From assembly GCA_025558095.1 (NCBI GenBank), contig JAIVFI010000001.1:558001-622000 (forward strand): a DNA stretch of 64,000 nt, in the 5' to 3' direction. The notes under the pieces are model-generated. The model ran no database searches, was not told where the DNA came from, and was given only the letters and a program-made list of their open reading frames with translations. Every line of letters starts with the position of its first letter. Positions within the stretch are counted from its first letter, which is position 1. The position numbers and the translations under genes were made by a program. Shown here in pieces: positions 5,634 to 58,468 of the stretch. This stretch comes from Hyaloraphidium curvatum SAG 235-1. Lineage: Eukaryota > Fungi > Monoblepharomycota.

Positions 5634-8078
5634 ATGGCGGAAGCCGTCGACATGACCCCCGCGGCCGCCAAGGCCGTGGACAAGGATGAGCTCCAGCTCG
5701 CGAAGGTGCCGTGTCTCCTTCGCCACCCGCCCCTCCGCGGCGCCCGCCCGCCCGCGCGGCGCCGCGGACCGCTCTGCCGGGACCGGCGGCTGTGGCGCAC
5801 GCTGCTTTCGCATCGGGCGCGGGCGCCATTCGTCGTCGCGGCCGGATTTCGGGTGGCCGTGGGAGCGCCTGAACTCACTCGCGCATCGCCGCCCGCAGCT
5901 CGGCTACAAGCAGGAGTTCCACCGAGGTCTCGGCGTATTCGAGAACGTGTGTTCCCCTCGTGCGGCCTCTCTGAGTACCGCTGAAGCTTCGCCTGTCGTC
6001 TCCCACCGCTGTCGCGAACCTCCGCTGCGTCGATGATCGCGTTCCAGTTCGCCGCCTCCTTCTCGACGATTGCCTTCGTGCTCGGTCTGCCGTCGCTTTT
6101 CGGCTTCGCCATGTACACCGGTGGCCCGCTGGTCGCGTGGATCAACTGGATCGTGATTGGTCGGCGGCTCCTCGCCATTCCACATCACAGGAATCTGACC
6201 CTGACCTTCGCTATTCCTTATCTAGGTTGCTGCGCCCTATGCACGGCCCTTACTCTTGCGGTGGGAAGGGCCCTGCTGGCGGCCTTGTATCCACGCTGAT
6301 TGGCTGCTTTTCAGGAAATCTGTTCCGCGTACCCGACCGCCGGAGGCATCTACTGTGCGCCGTCTCCGTTGCGGGACAACGCGAACGGAACTAACCCCCG
6401 ATGCCTGCACAGTCTGGTCTGCCCGTCTCGGTGGTGAAACCTGGGGTCCGTTCCTATCGTGGCTCACCGCCTGGTGGAGTTGGTGCGGATGGGGTGAGTC
6501 GCAGCCCTCCTCGCGACCGCTCCAATGCTGACGTGCCGTGGATACCTTCAAGTCGTCACATGGCCCGCCGTCTGCCACACGAACACGACCTTCCTGATCA
6601 GCGCGATCCTGATCAAGTACCCCGAATACACGAACCCGCTTTGGGTGATGTACATCATGGACGTCGTCCAGATCATCCTTACGGCGCTCGTACGTGGCTC
6701 GCGTTACACTCCAGCGCCGATTCTTTGCCTCACCAGCTCCCCAGGCGAACATCGTCAACGAGGAGTTCATGAAGTGGTTCTACCGCCTCTCCAGCGTGTA
6801 CATGCTCGTCGTCTACCTCCTCTTCTTCACCTGGCTGCCGGCAAAGGTGCCCAAATGGCAGTCTGGTTCGGTGATGTTGACGTACGTCGACGGGACCGGC
6901 GCGACCGAGTACTTTGGCAACCCGCAGGGCGCCCAGGCCTACGTCTGGTTGGTGGCGATGATCCCGAGGGCATCCACGGTGCTGACTCCTGAACAGGTTT
7001 GTCGCGCTTCTCTTCCCCGCCTGGACCTTCTATGGCTACGACGCTTCGGCGCACATCGCCGAGGAAACAAAGGGAGCAGCAAAGACAGCGTCACGCGGGA
7101 TGTACACCTCCGTCGCCCTCGCCTTCATTTGCTCGTTCGCAATGCTCATCATCCTCATCTTTGCTCTGCAAGACGGCGTTGACCCCGACACGGGCGACGT
7201 CATCCCGGGCGTGACCGAGATCGTCAACGCGTACGCGATCTACCCGCAGCCCATCGCCTACTTGTTCGAGACCACGCTCGGACCCGAGGGCGCCTTGGCT
7301 TTCATGTGCATGCTCTTCGTCGTGGGCTTTAACTGCGCCATCGCCTGCGCCATGTCCGGTGCGTTTCGCTGCTTCACATCCCCAACCGAAGCTAATCCTT
7401 TGCCGCCAGCTTCCCGCGTCACCTACGCCATTTCCCGCGACGGCATCCTGCCCTTCTCGCACTACTGGCACCACATGTCGGCCGCCAAGATGCCGGTCCG
7501 GGCCATGTGGCTCTGCACCGGCCTCTCCGTCCTGATCCTGCTCCCCGTGCTGGGCTCGACCGTCGCATTCACCGCGCTCAGTTCGACGGGCACGATCGCG
7601 GTCGACACCAGCTACCTCATCCCCATCGCCGGTCGCCTGACCGCTGCGCGCCACACCTTCAAGCCCGGGGAATGGAACTTGGGCCGCCTGTCGATCCCCA
7701 TGGGCACTTTCGTCTGCATCTGGATCACCATTCTCTTCGTCTGCCTTTGCCTGCCGCAGCTGTGGCCCGTGACGCCGCAGAACTTCAACTGTACGTGCCG
7801 CGCGGTGGCGGGGAGGAAGCTGGCTAACTCGACCCGCCGCCGCAGTCGCGCCCGTCATGATCGGCGGCATCACCCTGATTTCCTCCCTCGGCTGGATCTT
7901 CTCCGGCCGCAAGTGGTTCAAGGGCCCGCAGCGCCTCATCAGCGAGGCCGAAGCCGAGGCCATGGAGGAAGCCTACGCCGCAACCCACGGCGGCGAGCAC
8001 ATGCCGCACGACAAGCTGGAATACGATAACTACGCCCTTGAAGGCGAGATTTTGGCGTCCGCTGATCGCAAGCATTGA
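5634..8078 (+). CDS. APC-superfamily amino acid/GABA/choline/polyamine permease
   Basis: LAK|LGYKQEFHRGL, YPTAGGIY, YGYDASAHIAEET, SRVTYAISRDGILPFS, FKPGEWNLG, WFKGP; many short introns. Confidence 0.92.
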
Positions 8079-8291: not shown

Positions 8292-9053
8292 TCATGTGCG
8301 GGGGCCAGATAGTTGGCGGGGCGGGACGAGAGAGGTTTTCCATCTACAAATCATAGTCCGCTTCTTGCCGTCCGCCGGGCCCCCCATGCCCCGCGCGACC
8401 TTCCTTTCGATGCGGAAGATCGAGATGCGGGAAACCGACGCCCGTCCCGGCTGGGATTCGGCGGGTCGAGCGCAGAAATCGCGGTGGTCGACGACAGCAG
8501 GTCGGAACACATCGAGGACGAACGAGGGCGCGGAAACGAGGCTGGACCGTGGACGAGGAAGGATGGATGAGGAATGCCTTCTGTGACTCGCTTGTGGAAC
8601 GGCGGCCGCGAGCTGGAACTAGGCATCCCGGGGTAGCCTATTCGCAAAGACATTGGAGAGGCCTCGAACTGCTCTGCAGCGACATCCAGCGCCGTCTCCG
8701 TGGTCCAGTCTCCAGCAAATGTCATTCTCGCCGCGATTAATTCCAATAAACCTCCGTTTCCTGCGTCCTGGTCCCTCGCGGGGTCAAGAACCCAGGCGGC
8801 GTCGGTTTGTTTACTTCTTCAACATTCGCCATCACGCCGATTTCTGCGGCCGCGTCCCGCTTCTCACCGGGGCAACGGCCTTCTATGCGCGTGAGAGAAC
8901 GAAAGGAGCAGCCATAGAAAGTTGCCGCGCCCCATACATGGGCCGGCGACTGGTTGAGGCGGCTTACATCTCGGTTTCCGTCGGAAGGCGGGTTGAGGAC
9001 GCGTCTTCGGACGCTGGTTTGCTATTGGAGGGGACAGCATCGAGGTTGGACAT
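8292..9053 (-). CDS. possible small spliced hypothetical gene (tentative)
   Basis: ATG near 9053 (MSNLDAVPS...) with plausible GTAAGC and GTGAGA donors joining to the open frame ...WVLDPARDQDAG...; fills an otherwise 1.2 kb convergent gap; no recognisable motif. Confidence 0.3.
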
Positions 9054-9289
9054 GGAGTGATGGTGTTGGCACCCTCGGAGGCCCTAAATTGTCTTTGGGT
9101 CGGTCTACCGAGGAACCCGGAGAGAACCGTTCCTCGGAGTCGTTCTCCGCCATCAGGCGGCATAAATGGACTGGTCAGGAGTTCTCAACGGAAGCAATAG
9201 AAATAGACCATGCCGTACATCTGCAGCGATTCAAGCGCGGACCTCCTCGCCCCTTCGAGAGCACAACCAACCCCCCTCCTCCCGCCCCC

Positions 9290-9849
9290 TCACAACTCAT
9301 CCCTCTTCTCGAACTTCCTGTCCCTCTTCACCTGCCTTTCCGCCCCAACCACCTCCCCCAGGGTCCGCATCCGCTCCTCGATCCGCGAAACGGAGTCCGC
9401 GCGGGCGTTGAAGCCCTGTTCGCCGCCGTGGGGGGGGAGGGGCCGGAAGAGGTAGAAGTTGGGGATGTTTGCGACGTTGCCCTGTCGCACACGGTCAAAG
9501 AGGTTTGGAAACGGGCAAACGAGAGTCAGGAATCTGCCGGAACGTTATTGGGGACCGCTGTTCCACGCACCAAGTTCGCGCACCCCGCCTTCTTCGCCAC
9601 TGCATCCGGGTCCGCCCCCTCGGCCAGCTCGACGGCGTAGTCCCCGTCCTGGGCTTCGGGCGGGGGTTGTTGCGGCGCGGGCACGCGGTGGTGGTGTCCC
9701 GAGGCCGGAGAGTACGCCGAAACCGGGGCGAGGGCGGCGAGGATGTGTAGGAGGAGGAGAAAAAGGAGAAGGAGGATTGGAAGGAGGGTACGTGGCCGCA
9801 AGGGCCGATTCCGCAGAGAGCGCAGCACCGGTGGTGTCGAACGAGACAT
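9290..9849 (-). CDS. stand-alone subtilisin/kexin (S8) pro-domain protein with signal sequence and C-terminal RDEL
   Basis: Exons 9849-9571 and 9481-9290, 89-nt GT-AG intron, 156 aa. Hydrophobic leader, then YAVELAEGADPDAVAKKAGCANL|GNVANIPNFYLF...VVGAERQVKRDRKFEKRDEL*. Confidence 0.8.
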
Positions 9850-10192
9850 GTCGGGTAGTCCGAGGTCCAAGAAGGAGCAGAATCCAAAAGGAGAAGAAGA
9901 GATGGGCCGAAAATGAGCGCAGGAAGGAGAAAAGAAGCCCCAAGGTGGTCCGCAGATGTCAAGACGTGGCGGGACCAGCAAGCGTCCCAGCGAGGCGGAG
10001 GCGGAGGGGCAGTCACGCTTCGTAAGCGCCCGTTCATGAGCCCGGGCCGACCGTGGCCATAGCTGCAGCAACTCACATGACGGCGGAGGCATCGCTGGGA
10101 GCCGTTGGTAGGCGGGCCGACGTAGTGTTGCACGCGACGCTGCTTGCTGCGGCTTCGATTGGGCTTCGATCAGCAGCACCGCACCGGACGCG

Positions 10193-11242
10193 ATGGGGGA
10201 CAAATCCGAGGCCGAACGCGCCGCAGAGGCGCGCGAGGAAAAAGCGATCGCGATTTATCTCCGCCTGCGCGCGTTGGCGCCTACGTACCCCGTCGTCTCG
10301 CCCTCCGACGCGTCCGACGCCGAGCCGGAACGGGACGCGGCGCTCAAGCTGCCCTACGGCTCCGAATCGCGGCTCCAGTTCCTGCACCTCCGCTTTCCGG
10401 CAAATTGGATTCCCGGGAAGAAGGTGCCGGTGGTGGTCGCGATCCACGGCGGCTTCTGGAAGCGCCGCTACGGTATTGGTTACTTCGAGCCCCTTGCCGC
10501 GCGCCTGGCGGAGCAGCTAGGCGCCGCGACGGCCAACCTCGAGTACCGGCGGGTGCCTTCGGCCGAGTTGCCGACCTCGGGGGGGTCGGATGAGTATTGC
10601 GAGGACGAATCGCTGGACGGGGAGCACGACAGGGGAGGGTTCCCAAGGACGATCGACGACGTGTGCCAGGCGATCGGGTTCGTGGCATCTGAGCTTGCTC
10701 CACGTTACGGCCTGGATCCTGACCGGATCGTGGTTCTCGGACATTCGGCCGGAGGGCACCTGGCGGGCCTCGTCGCAGGCATTGCGAGCGCTGGCAGCGC
10801 TGACGCCGAACCGGTCCGATCATGGGTGAAGCTTCTGCATGGTGCCAAGATCCGCGGCGCCGTTGTGCTTGCCGGGGTCATGGACCTCGTAGAGGCGTCG
10901 AAACGCGGCGTCGGCAAGGGCGCGATCGCGGGCCTGATGGGCGCCGCCCCCGGGGACGCACCTGAGGAGTACCGCGCGGCATCCCCATCCACCTACCTGC
11001 CCGCCGTGCTGCGATCGACGCGCGTGCACCTGGTGCAAGGCACGGAGGACGACGACGTGCCGGCGGACAATGCGGACGAGTTTGCCGGGCGCGCCTCGCA
11101 GGTCGATCCAGCAGCGGTCAGGGAGGGCCGGTTCGCGATCACCAGGCTGGATGGCAGGGGGCACTTTGAGATGGTGGATCCGCAGGAGGGCGCCGAGGCG
11201 TGGACGGCTGTTGTTGAAGCGTGTAGATCGGTCCTCGGGTAG
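10193..11242 (+). CDS. alpha/beta hydrolase (HSL/BD-FAE-like esterase), intronless
   Basis: IHGGFW oxyanion motif, GHSAGG nucleophile, GTEDDDVP Asp, GHFEMVDP His. Confidence 0.9.
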   Translation: MGDKSEAERAAEAREEKAIAIYLRLRALAPTYPVVSPSDASDAEPERDAALKLPYGSESRLQFLHLRFPANWIPGKKVPVVVAIHGGFWKRRYGIGYFEPLAARLAEQLGAATANLEYRRVPSAELPTSGGSDEYCEDESLDGEHDRGGFPRTIDDVCQAIGFVASELAPRYGLDPDRIVVLGHSAGGHLAGLVAGIASAGSADAEPVRSWVKLLHGAKIRGAVVLAGVMDLVEASKRGVGKGAIAGLMGAAPGDAPEEYRAASPSTYLPAVLRSTRVHLVQGTEDDDVPADNADEFAGRASQVDPAAVREGRFAITRLDGRGHFEMVDPQEGAEAWTAVVEACRSVLG

Positions 11243-11356
11243 CAGATAGAACGCCCTCGCCGGCGGCGTGATTGGTCGACGCGAGTGTCCACCAACCAGG
11301 CAGACCCCACCCTCCGCTCCCGGCCCCAGCTCCGGCGCGTTACGCGGACCGCCGCG

Positions 11357-55609: not shown

Positions 55610-58267
<2,658 letters not shown>

Positions 58268-58468
58268 TCGGACAGCCTGTGATCCGGTCCGGAAGATCTC
58301 TGTCGGGGATGCGGCTGATGTAAGGGCATGATAGATTGATTGTAATGCTCCTGGCGCGAAAAAGAAGCGATTACCCGTGCGTGCCTCGCAGTTTTCTCCG
58401 GAGGTTTGCTTGGCCTTTTGGGAAGTTCCTCCGCCGCGATCGCGGACCCGTCCGAACCCGAACACGGA

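Follow-up and report, generated by a model that had tools for sequence, protein, structure and literature searches.

What does the prodomain of a protease do when no protease follows it? The question is raised by a gene of the early-diverging fungus Hyaloraphidium curvatum (genome of 31.9 Mb, 65% G+C) that lies on the minus strand at positions 9290-9849 of a 64,000-nucleotide (nt) stretch of DNA, C1:558001-622000, referred to here as the window. The gene is real, expressed and spliced. Its second coding exon ends AERQVKRDRKFEKRDEL followed by TGA, and its product of 156 amino acids (aa) ends ERQVKRDRKFEKRDEL, that is, with KRDEL at the C-terminus. The product combines a putative signal or anchor sequence with a domain homologous to the prodomains of kexin/furin-type convertases. 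The reading favoured here, with moderate confidence, is that this free-standing prodomain is retained in the endoplasmic reticulum (ER) through RDEL and inhibits kexins in trans.

Gene structure and expression

RNA evidence comes from contigs of one public run (X1) that cover the region. These contigs are identical to the window, with zero differing letters, and the contig that spans the stop codon also has zero gaps. The contigs lack the GT..AG introns of the prodomain gene and of both of its neighbours and therefore derive from spliced RNA. The 89-nt intron of the prodomain gene is removed exactly at its predicted ends. One contig is continuous from 9480 to 8835, stop codon included. Because it runs unbroken across the stop, the GTGAGG that overlaps the stop (9293-9288) did not act as a splice donor in that contig; assembled contigs may conceal rare splice variants.

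Does a convertase lie downstream? There is no Pfam match in the minus-strand open reading frames (ORFs) between 8354 and 9300, downstream of the stop, and none of the 15 matches to Peptidase_S8 (PF00082) in the genome falls on contig C1. The gene itself matches neither PF00082 nor PF01483, and C1 is likewise free of PF01483 matches. In other words, the polypeptide contains no S8 catalytic domain and no P domain, and the protein is a homologue of the prodomain, not of the convertase. The gene is single-copy, as a six-frame search of the genome with exon 2 returned this gene alone. One candidate structure, in which GTGAGG serves as a donor and the transcript splices on to a catalytic exon, was rejected in view of the unbroken contig and the absence of a downstream subtilase signal.

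The initial annotation, made from the letters alone, had described a 156-aa two-exon gene with no subtilase catalytic region downstream and had quoted a set of prodomain motifs. All of these motifs are present in the 156-aa protein; the exons, the intron and the stop are confirmed by sequence or RNA, and the transcript retains the stop. The description as a two-exon gene fits only the coding part of one isoform, because the transcript has an additional 5' exon with two acceptors.

A prodomain of the kexin/furin type

Homology to the kexin/furin-type (S8B) prodomains is well supported when all lines of evidence are combined. The Pfam profile S8_pro-domain (PF16470) matched residues 136-237 of P0001, the public 237-aa model of this gene (KAI9034205.1), with an expectation value (E) of 1.5e-5 and a score of 25.9 bits (gathering cut-off 25.5), over positions 2-76 of the 79 in the profile. 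The match corresponds to residues 71-148 of the 156-aa protein. A Pfam scan exon by exon found no S8_pro-domain and returned noise only (UstYa, Trimer_CC), because each exon holds half a domain. Inhibitor_I9 (PF05922) gave no match at E <= 10.

The profile match, which bears out the prodomain assignment of the initial annotation, is backed by searches of sequence and of fold and by a complex model. A phmmer search against 177,635 PDB sequences returned three matches at E <= 10, and all three were PC1/3 prodomains aligned end-to-end (E 0.03-0.19). This alignment pairs AERQVKRDRKFEKR with AEQQYEKERSKR, where PC1/3 has its primary cleavage site. In BLASTP, the prodomains of the three kexins encoded in the same genome aligned in register to the beta1-beta3 segment (E 6e-5, 0.001, and 0.012), while exon 2 alone gave no BLASTP match to these kexins. 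Searches for homologous proteins with exon 1 and with the domain found no match.

The 3-row alignment behind an AlphaFold2 model consisted of the protein and two orthologue fragments and contained zero kexin sequences. The model has the order beta-alpha-beta-beta-alpha-beta (strands E17-21, E36-41, E48-53, and E83-88; helices H27-34 and H70-79) with a predicted local distance difference test score (pLDDT) of 64. The best Foldseek matches of the model in the PDB were PC1/3 prodomains, free or furin-bound (9fie_B, 9fid, 9fic), with E between 2e-4 and 9e-4 and a target template-modelling (TM) score of 0.65-0.73. Shape searches of the ESM Atlas converged on the same family: the best matches were the prodomains of PCSK6, PC1, and furin, with 68-72 residues aligned at 1.9-2.7 Å. 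Feature searches of the same atlas all scored below 0.9 and serve as leads only. The protein has basic pairs (KR) at residues 145-146 and 152-153, after beta4. Animal convertases carry a second, multibasic inactivating cleavage site in the beta3-alpha2 loop, whereas the same loop of this protein has no dibasic site.

A further observation concerns an ESM Atlas cluster of unnamed proteins of ~98 aa (98 members, mostly Basidiomycota) whose whole fold is common with the model (TM 0.65/0.67 over 86 residues). Judged from modelled shape, this basidiomycete family may comprise further stand-alone propeptide-like proteins.

A putative signal sequence and a KDEL-type tag

The N-terminus of the 156-aa form has a hydrophobic core with a basic flank. 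The highest-scoring Kyte-Doolittle window of 19 aa (mean 2.96) begins at residue 22, and the preceding 21 residues contain six K/R and zero D/E. The likely cleavage point of the signal was placed by eye. Whether it works as a signal peptide or as a type II anchor, the domain and the C-terminal tag would be lumenal. In its basic n-region and Leu-rich core, this sequence (encoded at 9715-9849) resembles the kexin on contig C33 (L001:1213-2160, minus strand) with 33% identity over 55 aa in BLASTP (E 0.003). The likeness could be the trace of a partial duplication or merely shared composition.

The last four residues fit the ER-retrieval pattern [KRHQSA][DENQ]EL (PROSITE PS00014), as does REEL. 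The BiP orthologue of H. curvatum, an HSP70 encoded on contig C12, ends ...GDDEDRMRDEL and so carries the same tetrapeptide as the prodomain gene. Since BiP ends in RDEL, it is RDEL, not KDEL or HDEL, that is the BiP retention signal of this organism. A gene for the ERD2 receptor (PF00810) is present at C8:190154-190691 with matches of 89 and 86 bits. The end of BiP and the presence of ERD2 both support the initial reading of RDEL as a KDEL-type ER tag. The last exon of the BiP-type HSP70 gene lies at L024:1893-2249 (C12, plus strand).

Predicted docking on a kexin of H. curvatum

The genome has three kexins, located on contigs C33, C17, and C21, and each has a P domain. The C21 kexin (P0117:17-500, contiguous catalytic and P domain) was modelled in complex with residues 148-237 of P0001. 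The complex scored 0.94 and the best control 0.37; 51 of 78 solved complexes and 2 of 108 mismatched pairs come up to that mark. The runs agreed in at least 91% of contacts, and the pLDDT of the partner was at least 83. The least expected error was assigned to the contacts of K233 and R234 of P0001 (K152-R153 in the numbering of the 156-aa form) with Asp75/76, His115, and residues 288-290 on the kexin side. Counted on the P0117 sequence, Asp75, His115, and 288-290 are the catalytic Asp, the catalytic His, and the catalytic-Ser stretch. Residues 224-237 of P0001 all touch the enzyme in the model, DEL included. The model therefore predicts that the tail lies in the cleft like a substrate or product, with FEKR in S4-S1 (K-R in S2-S1) and DEL on the prime side. 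Binding to a kexin and the register of binding are thus supported in silico.

The annotated C21 kexin (P0117, 629 aa; L013:4387-6932) begins at an internal Met; upstream of it, the same frame encodes a divergent pro-like region as well as a signal peptide. Its C-terminus, with a Ser/Thr-rich stretch plus a short hydrophobic tail, lacks a cytosolic tail and looks like that of a glycosylphosphatidylinositol-anchored protein. The possibility that this kexin has no pro-region at all, as after the splitting of a gene, was rejected in view of the divergent pro-like stretch and the signal peptide.

Does the free-standing prodomain inhibit a kexin or fold it? The N-terminal region of the C21 kexin (L013:4387-5088) was not recognised by PF16470 at E <= 0.1, and a six-frame scan with S8_pro-domain matched the C33 and C17 kexins only. 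One model based on these results is a trans-acting foldase: an ER-resident prodomain would help to fold a kexin that has a degenerate pro-region, as ORF2 does for the kexin-like protease ASP of Aeromonas sobria, and would be released afterwards. It was precisely the C21 kexin that gave the high-scoring complex, and ER residence is compatible with a folding role. Furthermore, ORF_2_N and Fervidolysin_NPro-like clusters occur among the feature and shape neighbours of the protein, and Foldseek matched ORF2 itself (3wqb_B, E 0.19). However, the C21 kexin keeps a stretch that looks like a prodomain by eye (GCDVLGTVANLADQFAV..., the BLASTP match at E 0.012) and a LAKR site before its catalytic domain, and a foldase in place of an inhibitor appears quite unlikely. 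Chaperone and inhibitor roles are not exclusive in subtilase prodomains, and the present data do not separate them.

Conservation of the domain and its tail

A phmmer search with exon 2 against 1.84 billion cluster representatives returned 116 matches, among which there was one real relative (P0008) besides the protein itself. Ten of the matches were inspected by sequence, and the rest were judged by their like pattern of short, multiple stretches. Eight of the ten (P0002, P0017, P0023, P0035, P0044, P0055, P0103, and P0108) were rejected as translated arrays of clustered regularly interspaced short palindromic repeats (CRISPR) that had been called as proteins. Their repeats (FNPLPPHGGR, FQSTPSAWRET, and similar) match the PLPPHGG loop by chance. 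A metagenome scan with the exon-2 alignment found no relative, nor did a degenerate DNA pattern for GN[IV]ANIPxxYLFRP.

The orthologue P0008 lies on a metagenome contig of 607 nt (L012). This contig reads PEATDGDYAVELEMGTDVEAVAKATNCKNI, then a 209-nt intron at the identical position, then GNIANIPDHYLFRPL...SAERQYKRERNFEKREEL and a stop at the same place. Exon 2 is 57% identical between the two sequences, with AERQ.KR.R.FEKR.EL invariant and both basic pairs kept, and conservation is concentrated in the strands and the tail. The beta3-alpha2 loop of the orthologue is 7 residues shorter than the H. curvatum loop and is free of basic residues. With each exon counted separately against the orthologue, the ratio of nonsynonymous to synonymous substitution (dN/dS) is ~0.5 at a dS of ~0.76. 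The initial annotation had staked its reading on an xDEL end in orthologues; the only orthologue found ends FEKREEL, which still fits the retrieval pattern.

How is the conserved end to be read? One answer is an inhibitor or decoy substrate that is secreted or works beyond the ER and in which D-E-L is kept merely to fill S1'-S3'; either the protein would escape retention or immediate cleavage would let it out of the ER. The contacts of DEL with the enzyme in the complex model would fit this answer, and EEL in the orthologue indicates that the tetrapeptide is not strictly fixed. Nevertheless, RDEL is the end of BiP, REEL is still a retrieval signal by pattern, and both species end exactly three residues past the dibasic site, which a prime-side role alone does not demand. 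A protein that escapes the ER in this way is therefore highly improbable.

It might also be asked whether the gene has any kexin-related function today. The family is tiny (two sequences among the 1.84 billion cluster representatives), its constraint is moderate by dN/dS, and the likeness of the signal region to that of the C33 kexin is what a partial duplication would leave, all of which would suit a truncated kexin duplicate that survives as an expressed relic. The frame, however, is intact, and the intron position and the stop codon are the same in a second species at a dS of ~0.76. The strands and the tail are the most conserved parts, and the gene is expressed and correctly spliced, with no catalytic remnants downstream. 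Moreover, the gene must be old, because it is no closer to any kexin of its own genome than to animal PC1/3. A relic is scarcely credible on this evidence.

A second splice form

The RNA contigs reveal an additional 5' exon that ends at 10077 with the donor GTGAGT. One donor (10076) is joined to two acceptors, at 10017 and at 9653. The short side of both joints is 29 letters, which is under the 31-letter rule; both joints have the common donor and canonical ends on the strand of the gene, and the 9653/10077 joint has no shared letters. This second form, which removes the signal sequence, had gone unseen in the initial annotation.

The two forms differ in what they encode. In isoform A, ATG 10092, which comes first in the sequenced 5' exon, opens an upstream ORF of 6 codons (MPPPSS-stop), and the next ATG is that of the 156-aa protein at 9849, 164 nt further on. 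In isoform B, ATG 9849 is spliced away together with the signal or anchor sequence, and ATG 10092 is in frame with the domain, reading MPPPSS-QDGDYAVEL... into the prodomain to give a product of ~96 aa. Contig depth is 326 for the part specific to isoform A and 772 for the shared part, which hints that both isoforms are substantial, contig depth being a poor measure of isoform level.

Could isoform B be the main product? It would then act as a cytosolic inhibitor of escaped subtilases in the manner of the yeast protein PBI2, and RDEL would be irrelevant or incidental. PBI2 and POIA1 are stand-alone inhibitors that are intracellular and have no signal sequence. The 9653/10077 joint, with its canonical GT..AG, is in the deepest contig, and the first ATG of the 5' exon leads into the domain in isoform B but only into the short upstream ORF in isoform A. 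Against this stand the short side of the joint and the weakness of depth as a measure, as well as the luminal location of kexins. Isoform A encodes a strong candidate signal or anchor sequence, and a tetrapeptide identical to that of BiP is kept as xEEL in the orthologue. It is decidedly improbable, in our view, that the signal-less form is the main product.

The public model KAI9034205.1 takes ATG 10092 as its start and includes the 59-nt 5' intron as coding sequence. Its residues 82-237 are the 156-aa protein, and according to the RNA its N-terminus is mis-modelled; the first 81 residues are unlikely to be produced as modelled. On the other strand, a divergent neighbour at 10077-11275 (plus strand) encodes, from ATG 10193 and with no intron seen, a BD-FAE/alpha-beta hydrolase of 349 aa. 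The RNA contig of the hydrolase gene begins at 10077, within the 5' exon of the prodomain gene, so the two genes have either a head-to-head overlap of transcripts or a very short common promoter region.

Proposed mode of action

How might a free-standing prodomain act on kexins? In the favoured reading, the signal-bearing isoform would enter the ER, and the prodomain, free or membrane-anchored, would be held in the early secretory pathway by ERD2, which would recognise the C-terminal RDEL. It would then bind one or more of the three kexins at the catalytic domain, in the way that a convertase's own cleaved prodomain does, with its C-terminal strand in the substrate cleft (F-E-K-R in S4-S1 and D-E-L on the prime side). 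Such a protein would be a competitive, substrate-like or product-like inhibitor in trans and would keep kexin activity low in the ER and early Golgi. Inhibition or chaperoning in trans would both lie within the proposed role. A cut after K-R would remove DEL and hence the retrieval tag. The lack of a second, inactivating basic site in the loop favours a stable inhibitor rather than a self-destructing one.

A more elaborate version, which appears unlikely, is a self-resetting regulator of kexins in two compartments. Splicing at the 5' end would select an ER-targeted or a cytosolic prodomain, and retention would be a switch operated by the protease. Because RDEL starts at P1 of the convertase site, free inhibitor would be recycled to the ER, and inhibitor engaged by active kexin would have its tag masked or clipped and would exit with the enzyme.

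Several observations weigh against inhibition by an ER-retained prodomain. The profile score is borderline, and on the whole 156 aa it is 24.4 bits, just below the cut-off. Binding is predicted by modelling, and inhibition and localisation are inferred. The high complex score may reflect memory of solved convertase-prodomain complexes and demonstrates likeness, not binding by this copy, nor does the model tell which kexin, if any, is the partner. The need for an inhibitor in trans is not obvious because all three kexins carry their own N-terminal pro-regions. The contig depths suggest that the signal-less form may equal the secretory form in abundance, and in a form that has no signal RDEL would have no role. 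DEL could be kept as P1'-P3' residues instead of as a receptor ligand. Finally, a dN/dS of this size reflects only moderate constraint, and the single known orthologue lacks its 5' end, so that the signal-sequence region is not covered.

Taken as a whole, the interpretation given in the initial annotation is supported, and none of the three checks that it had named as refuting went against it. ER residence, inhibition as opposed to chaperoning, and cleavage after KR as a switch are the inferred parts of it.

Map of the locus

The features of the prodomain gene are collected below. On its other side, a convergent gene for an amino-acid permease ends near 8029. A gene for a DnaK/mitochondrial-type HSP70 with several introns lies at 56127-58323 (plus strand) of the window.

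Table 1. Features of the prodomain gene in window coordinates, from the 5' exon to the end of the RNA contig.
Feature	Position	Strand	Evidence
5' exon, RNA-supported end; holds ATG 10092-10090, true start further upstream	10077..10105	minus	29 letters in each of two contigs, continuing at 9653 or at 10017
5' intron of isoform A, 59 nt, GTGAGT..AG	10018..10076	minus	RNA joint 10017/10077 (CT..AC on plus strand)
423-nt alternative intron of isoform B; donor as in isoform A, AG of the acceptor at 9655-9654	9654..10076	minus	RNA joint 9653/10077 (CT..AC)
ATG of the 156-aa form	9849-9847	minus	
First coding exon of isoform A (93 codons), with the putative signal sequence, a Pro/His-rich linker, beta1-alpha1, and the start of beta2 (DGDYAVELAEGADPDAVAKKAGCANL)	9571..9849	minus	Sequence, RNA, and Pfam
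N-terminal signal peptide or type II signal anchor (putative), residues 1-45: basic n-region, Leu-rich core, V-S-A before likely cleavage point	9715..9849	minus	
Phase-0 intron inside the prodomain, 89 nt, GTGCGT..CAG	9482..9570	minus	RNA joint 9480/9570 (+1)
Coding exon 2, 63 codons	9293-9481	minus	
Prodomain part of exon 2: end of beta2, beta3 (NFYLF), loop, alpha2, beta4 (VVGAERQ), then KR	9317..9481	minus	PF16470 match and secondary structure of the model
C-terminal tail KFEKRDEL	9293..9316	minus	Alignment to the PC1/3 end ...EKERSKR, complex model, and BiP comparison
KDEL-type tag R153-D-E-L156	9304-9293	minus	Sequence
TGA stop, kept in RNA	9290..9292	minus	Contig contiguous from 8835 to 9480
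3' untranslated region as far as the RNA contig goes, ~455 nt, no Pfam-family coding similarity	8835..9289	minus	

Comparison with known systems

The main control on a proprotein convertase is the prodomain made covalently with it, and the known trans regulators are unrelated to that prodomain and confined to animals. The animal proteins 7B2 and proSAAS bind PC2 and PC1/3, respectively; they meet the convertase in the ER and inhibit it via a C-terminal peptide with a basic pair that the enzyme can cleave, and they have no KDEL-type tag. In contrast to the H. curvatum protein, they are not prodomain homologues, being unrelated to it in sequence and fold.

Stand-alone propeptide-like inhibitors are well established for other subtilases and include PBI2 of yeast, POIA1 of Pleurotus, SPI-1 of Arabidopsis, TgMIC5 of Toxoplasma, and SUB1-ProM of Plasmodium (PMC6993865). 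Like these inhibitors, of which PBI2, POIA1, and SPI-1 belong to MEROPS I9, the H. curvatum protein is a small independent gene product that mimics a subtilase propeptide, and where they have been tested such inhibitors act on the cognate subtilase in trans via their C-terminal residues. The initial annotation knew of no such system. That holds for the kexin type, as no description of a stand-alone kexin-type prodomain was found in literature of which coverage was partial, which is not proof of novelty; it does not hold for subtilases at large, in view of the inhibitors of other subfamilies (PMC6993865). The known stand-alone mimics all serve subtilisin-, proteinase K- or SUB1-type (S8A) enzymes, not kexin-type ones, and most lack sequence similarity to real propeptides. 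The H. curvatum protein, in contrast, matches the S8B prodomain profile and not PF05922, and its ER tag abuts the dibasic site.

Another known system is ORF2, a separate propeptide-like protein that serves a kexin-subfamily protease which has no functional propeptide of its own. ORF2 (3wqb) appears among the fold and feature neighbours of the H. curvatum protein, and the match is much weaker than that to the convertase prodomains. No kexin is linked to the present gene, whereas the gene for ORF2 stands next to that of its protease; ORF2, a bacterial two-domain protein, also carries no retention signal.

The prodomains of PC1/3, furin, and Kex2 (PF16470) are homologues. They have the same fold and a detectable sequence relationship, and their primary autocleavage site aligns with the C-terminal K-R of the H. 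curvatum protein. Docking on the catalytic domain with K-R in S2-S1 would be a further likeness, predicted here by modelling. The differences are that no catalytic or P domain is joined to the prodomain and that the protein ends three residues past the dibasic site with a KDEL-type tag. If the favoured reading is true, this fungus has turned an intramolecular inhibitor into a separately regulated factor, which would be a compact natural template for compartment-restricted inhibitors of convertases. The gene would also offer a testable case of a protease that removes a retention signal, with splicing perhaps deciding whether the inhibitor enters the secretory pathway; two public H. curvatum gene models are corrected as well. 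What sets this gene apart from the known systems is that its product belongs to the kexin/furin prodomain family by both profile and fold, that its ER tag starts at the P1 arginine, and that its signal sequence may be removable by splicing.

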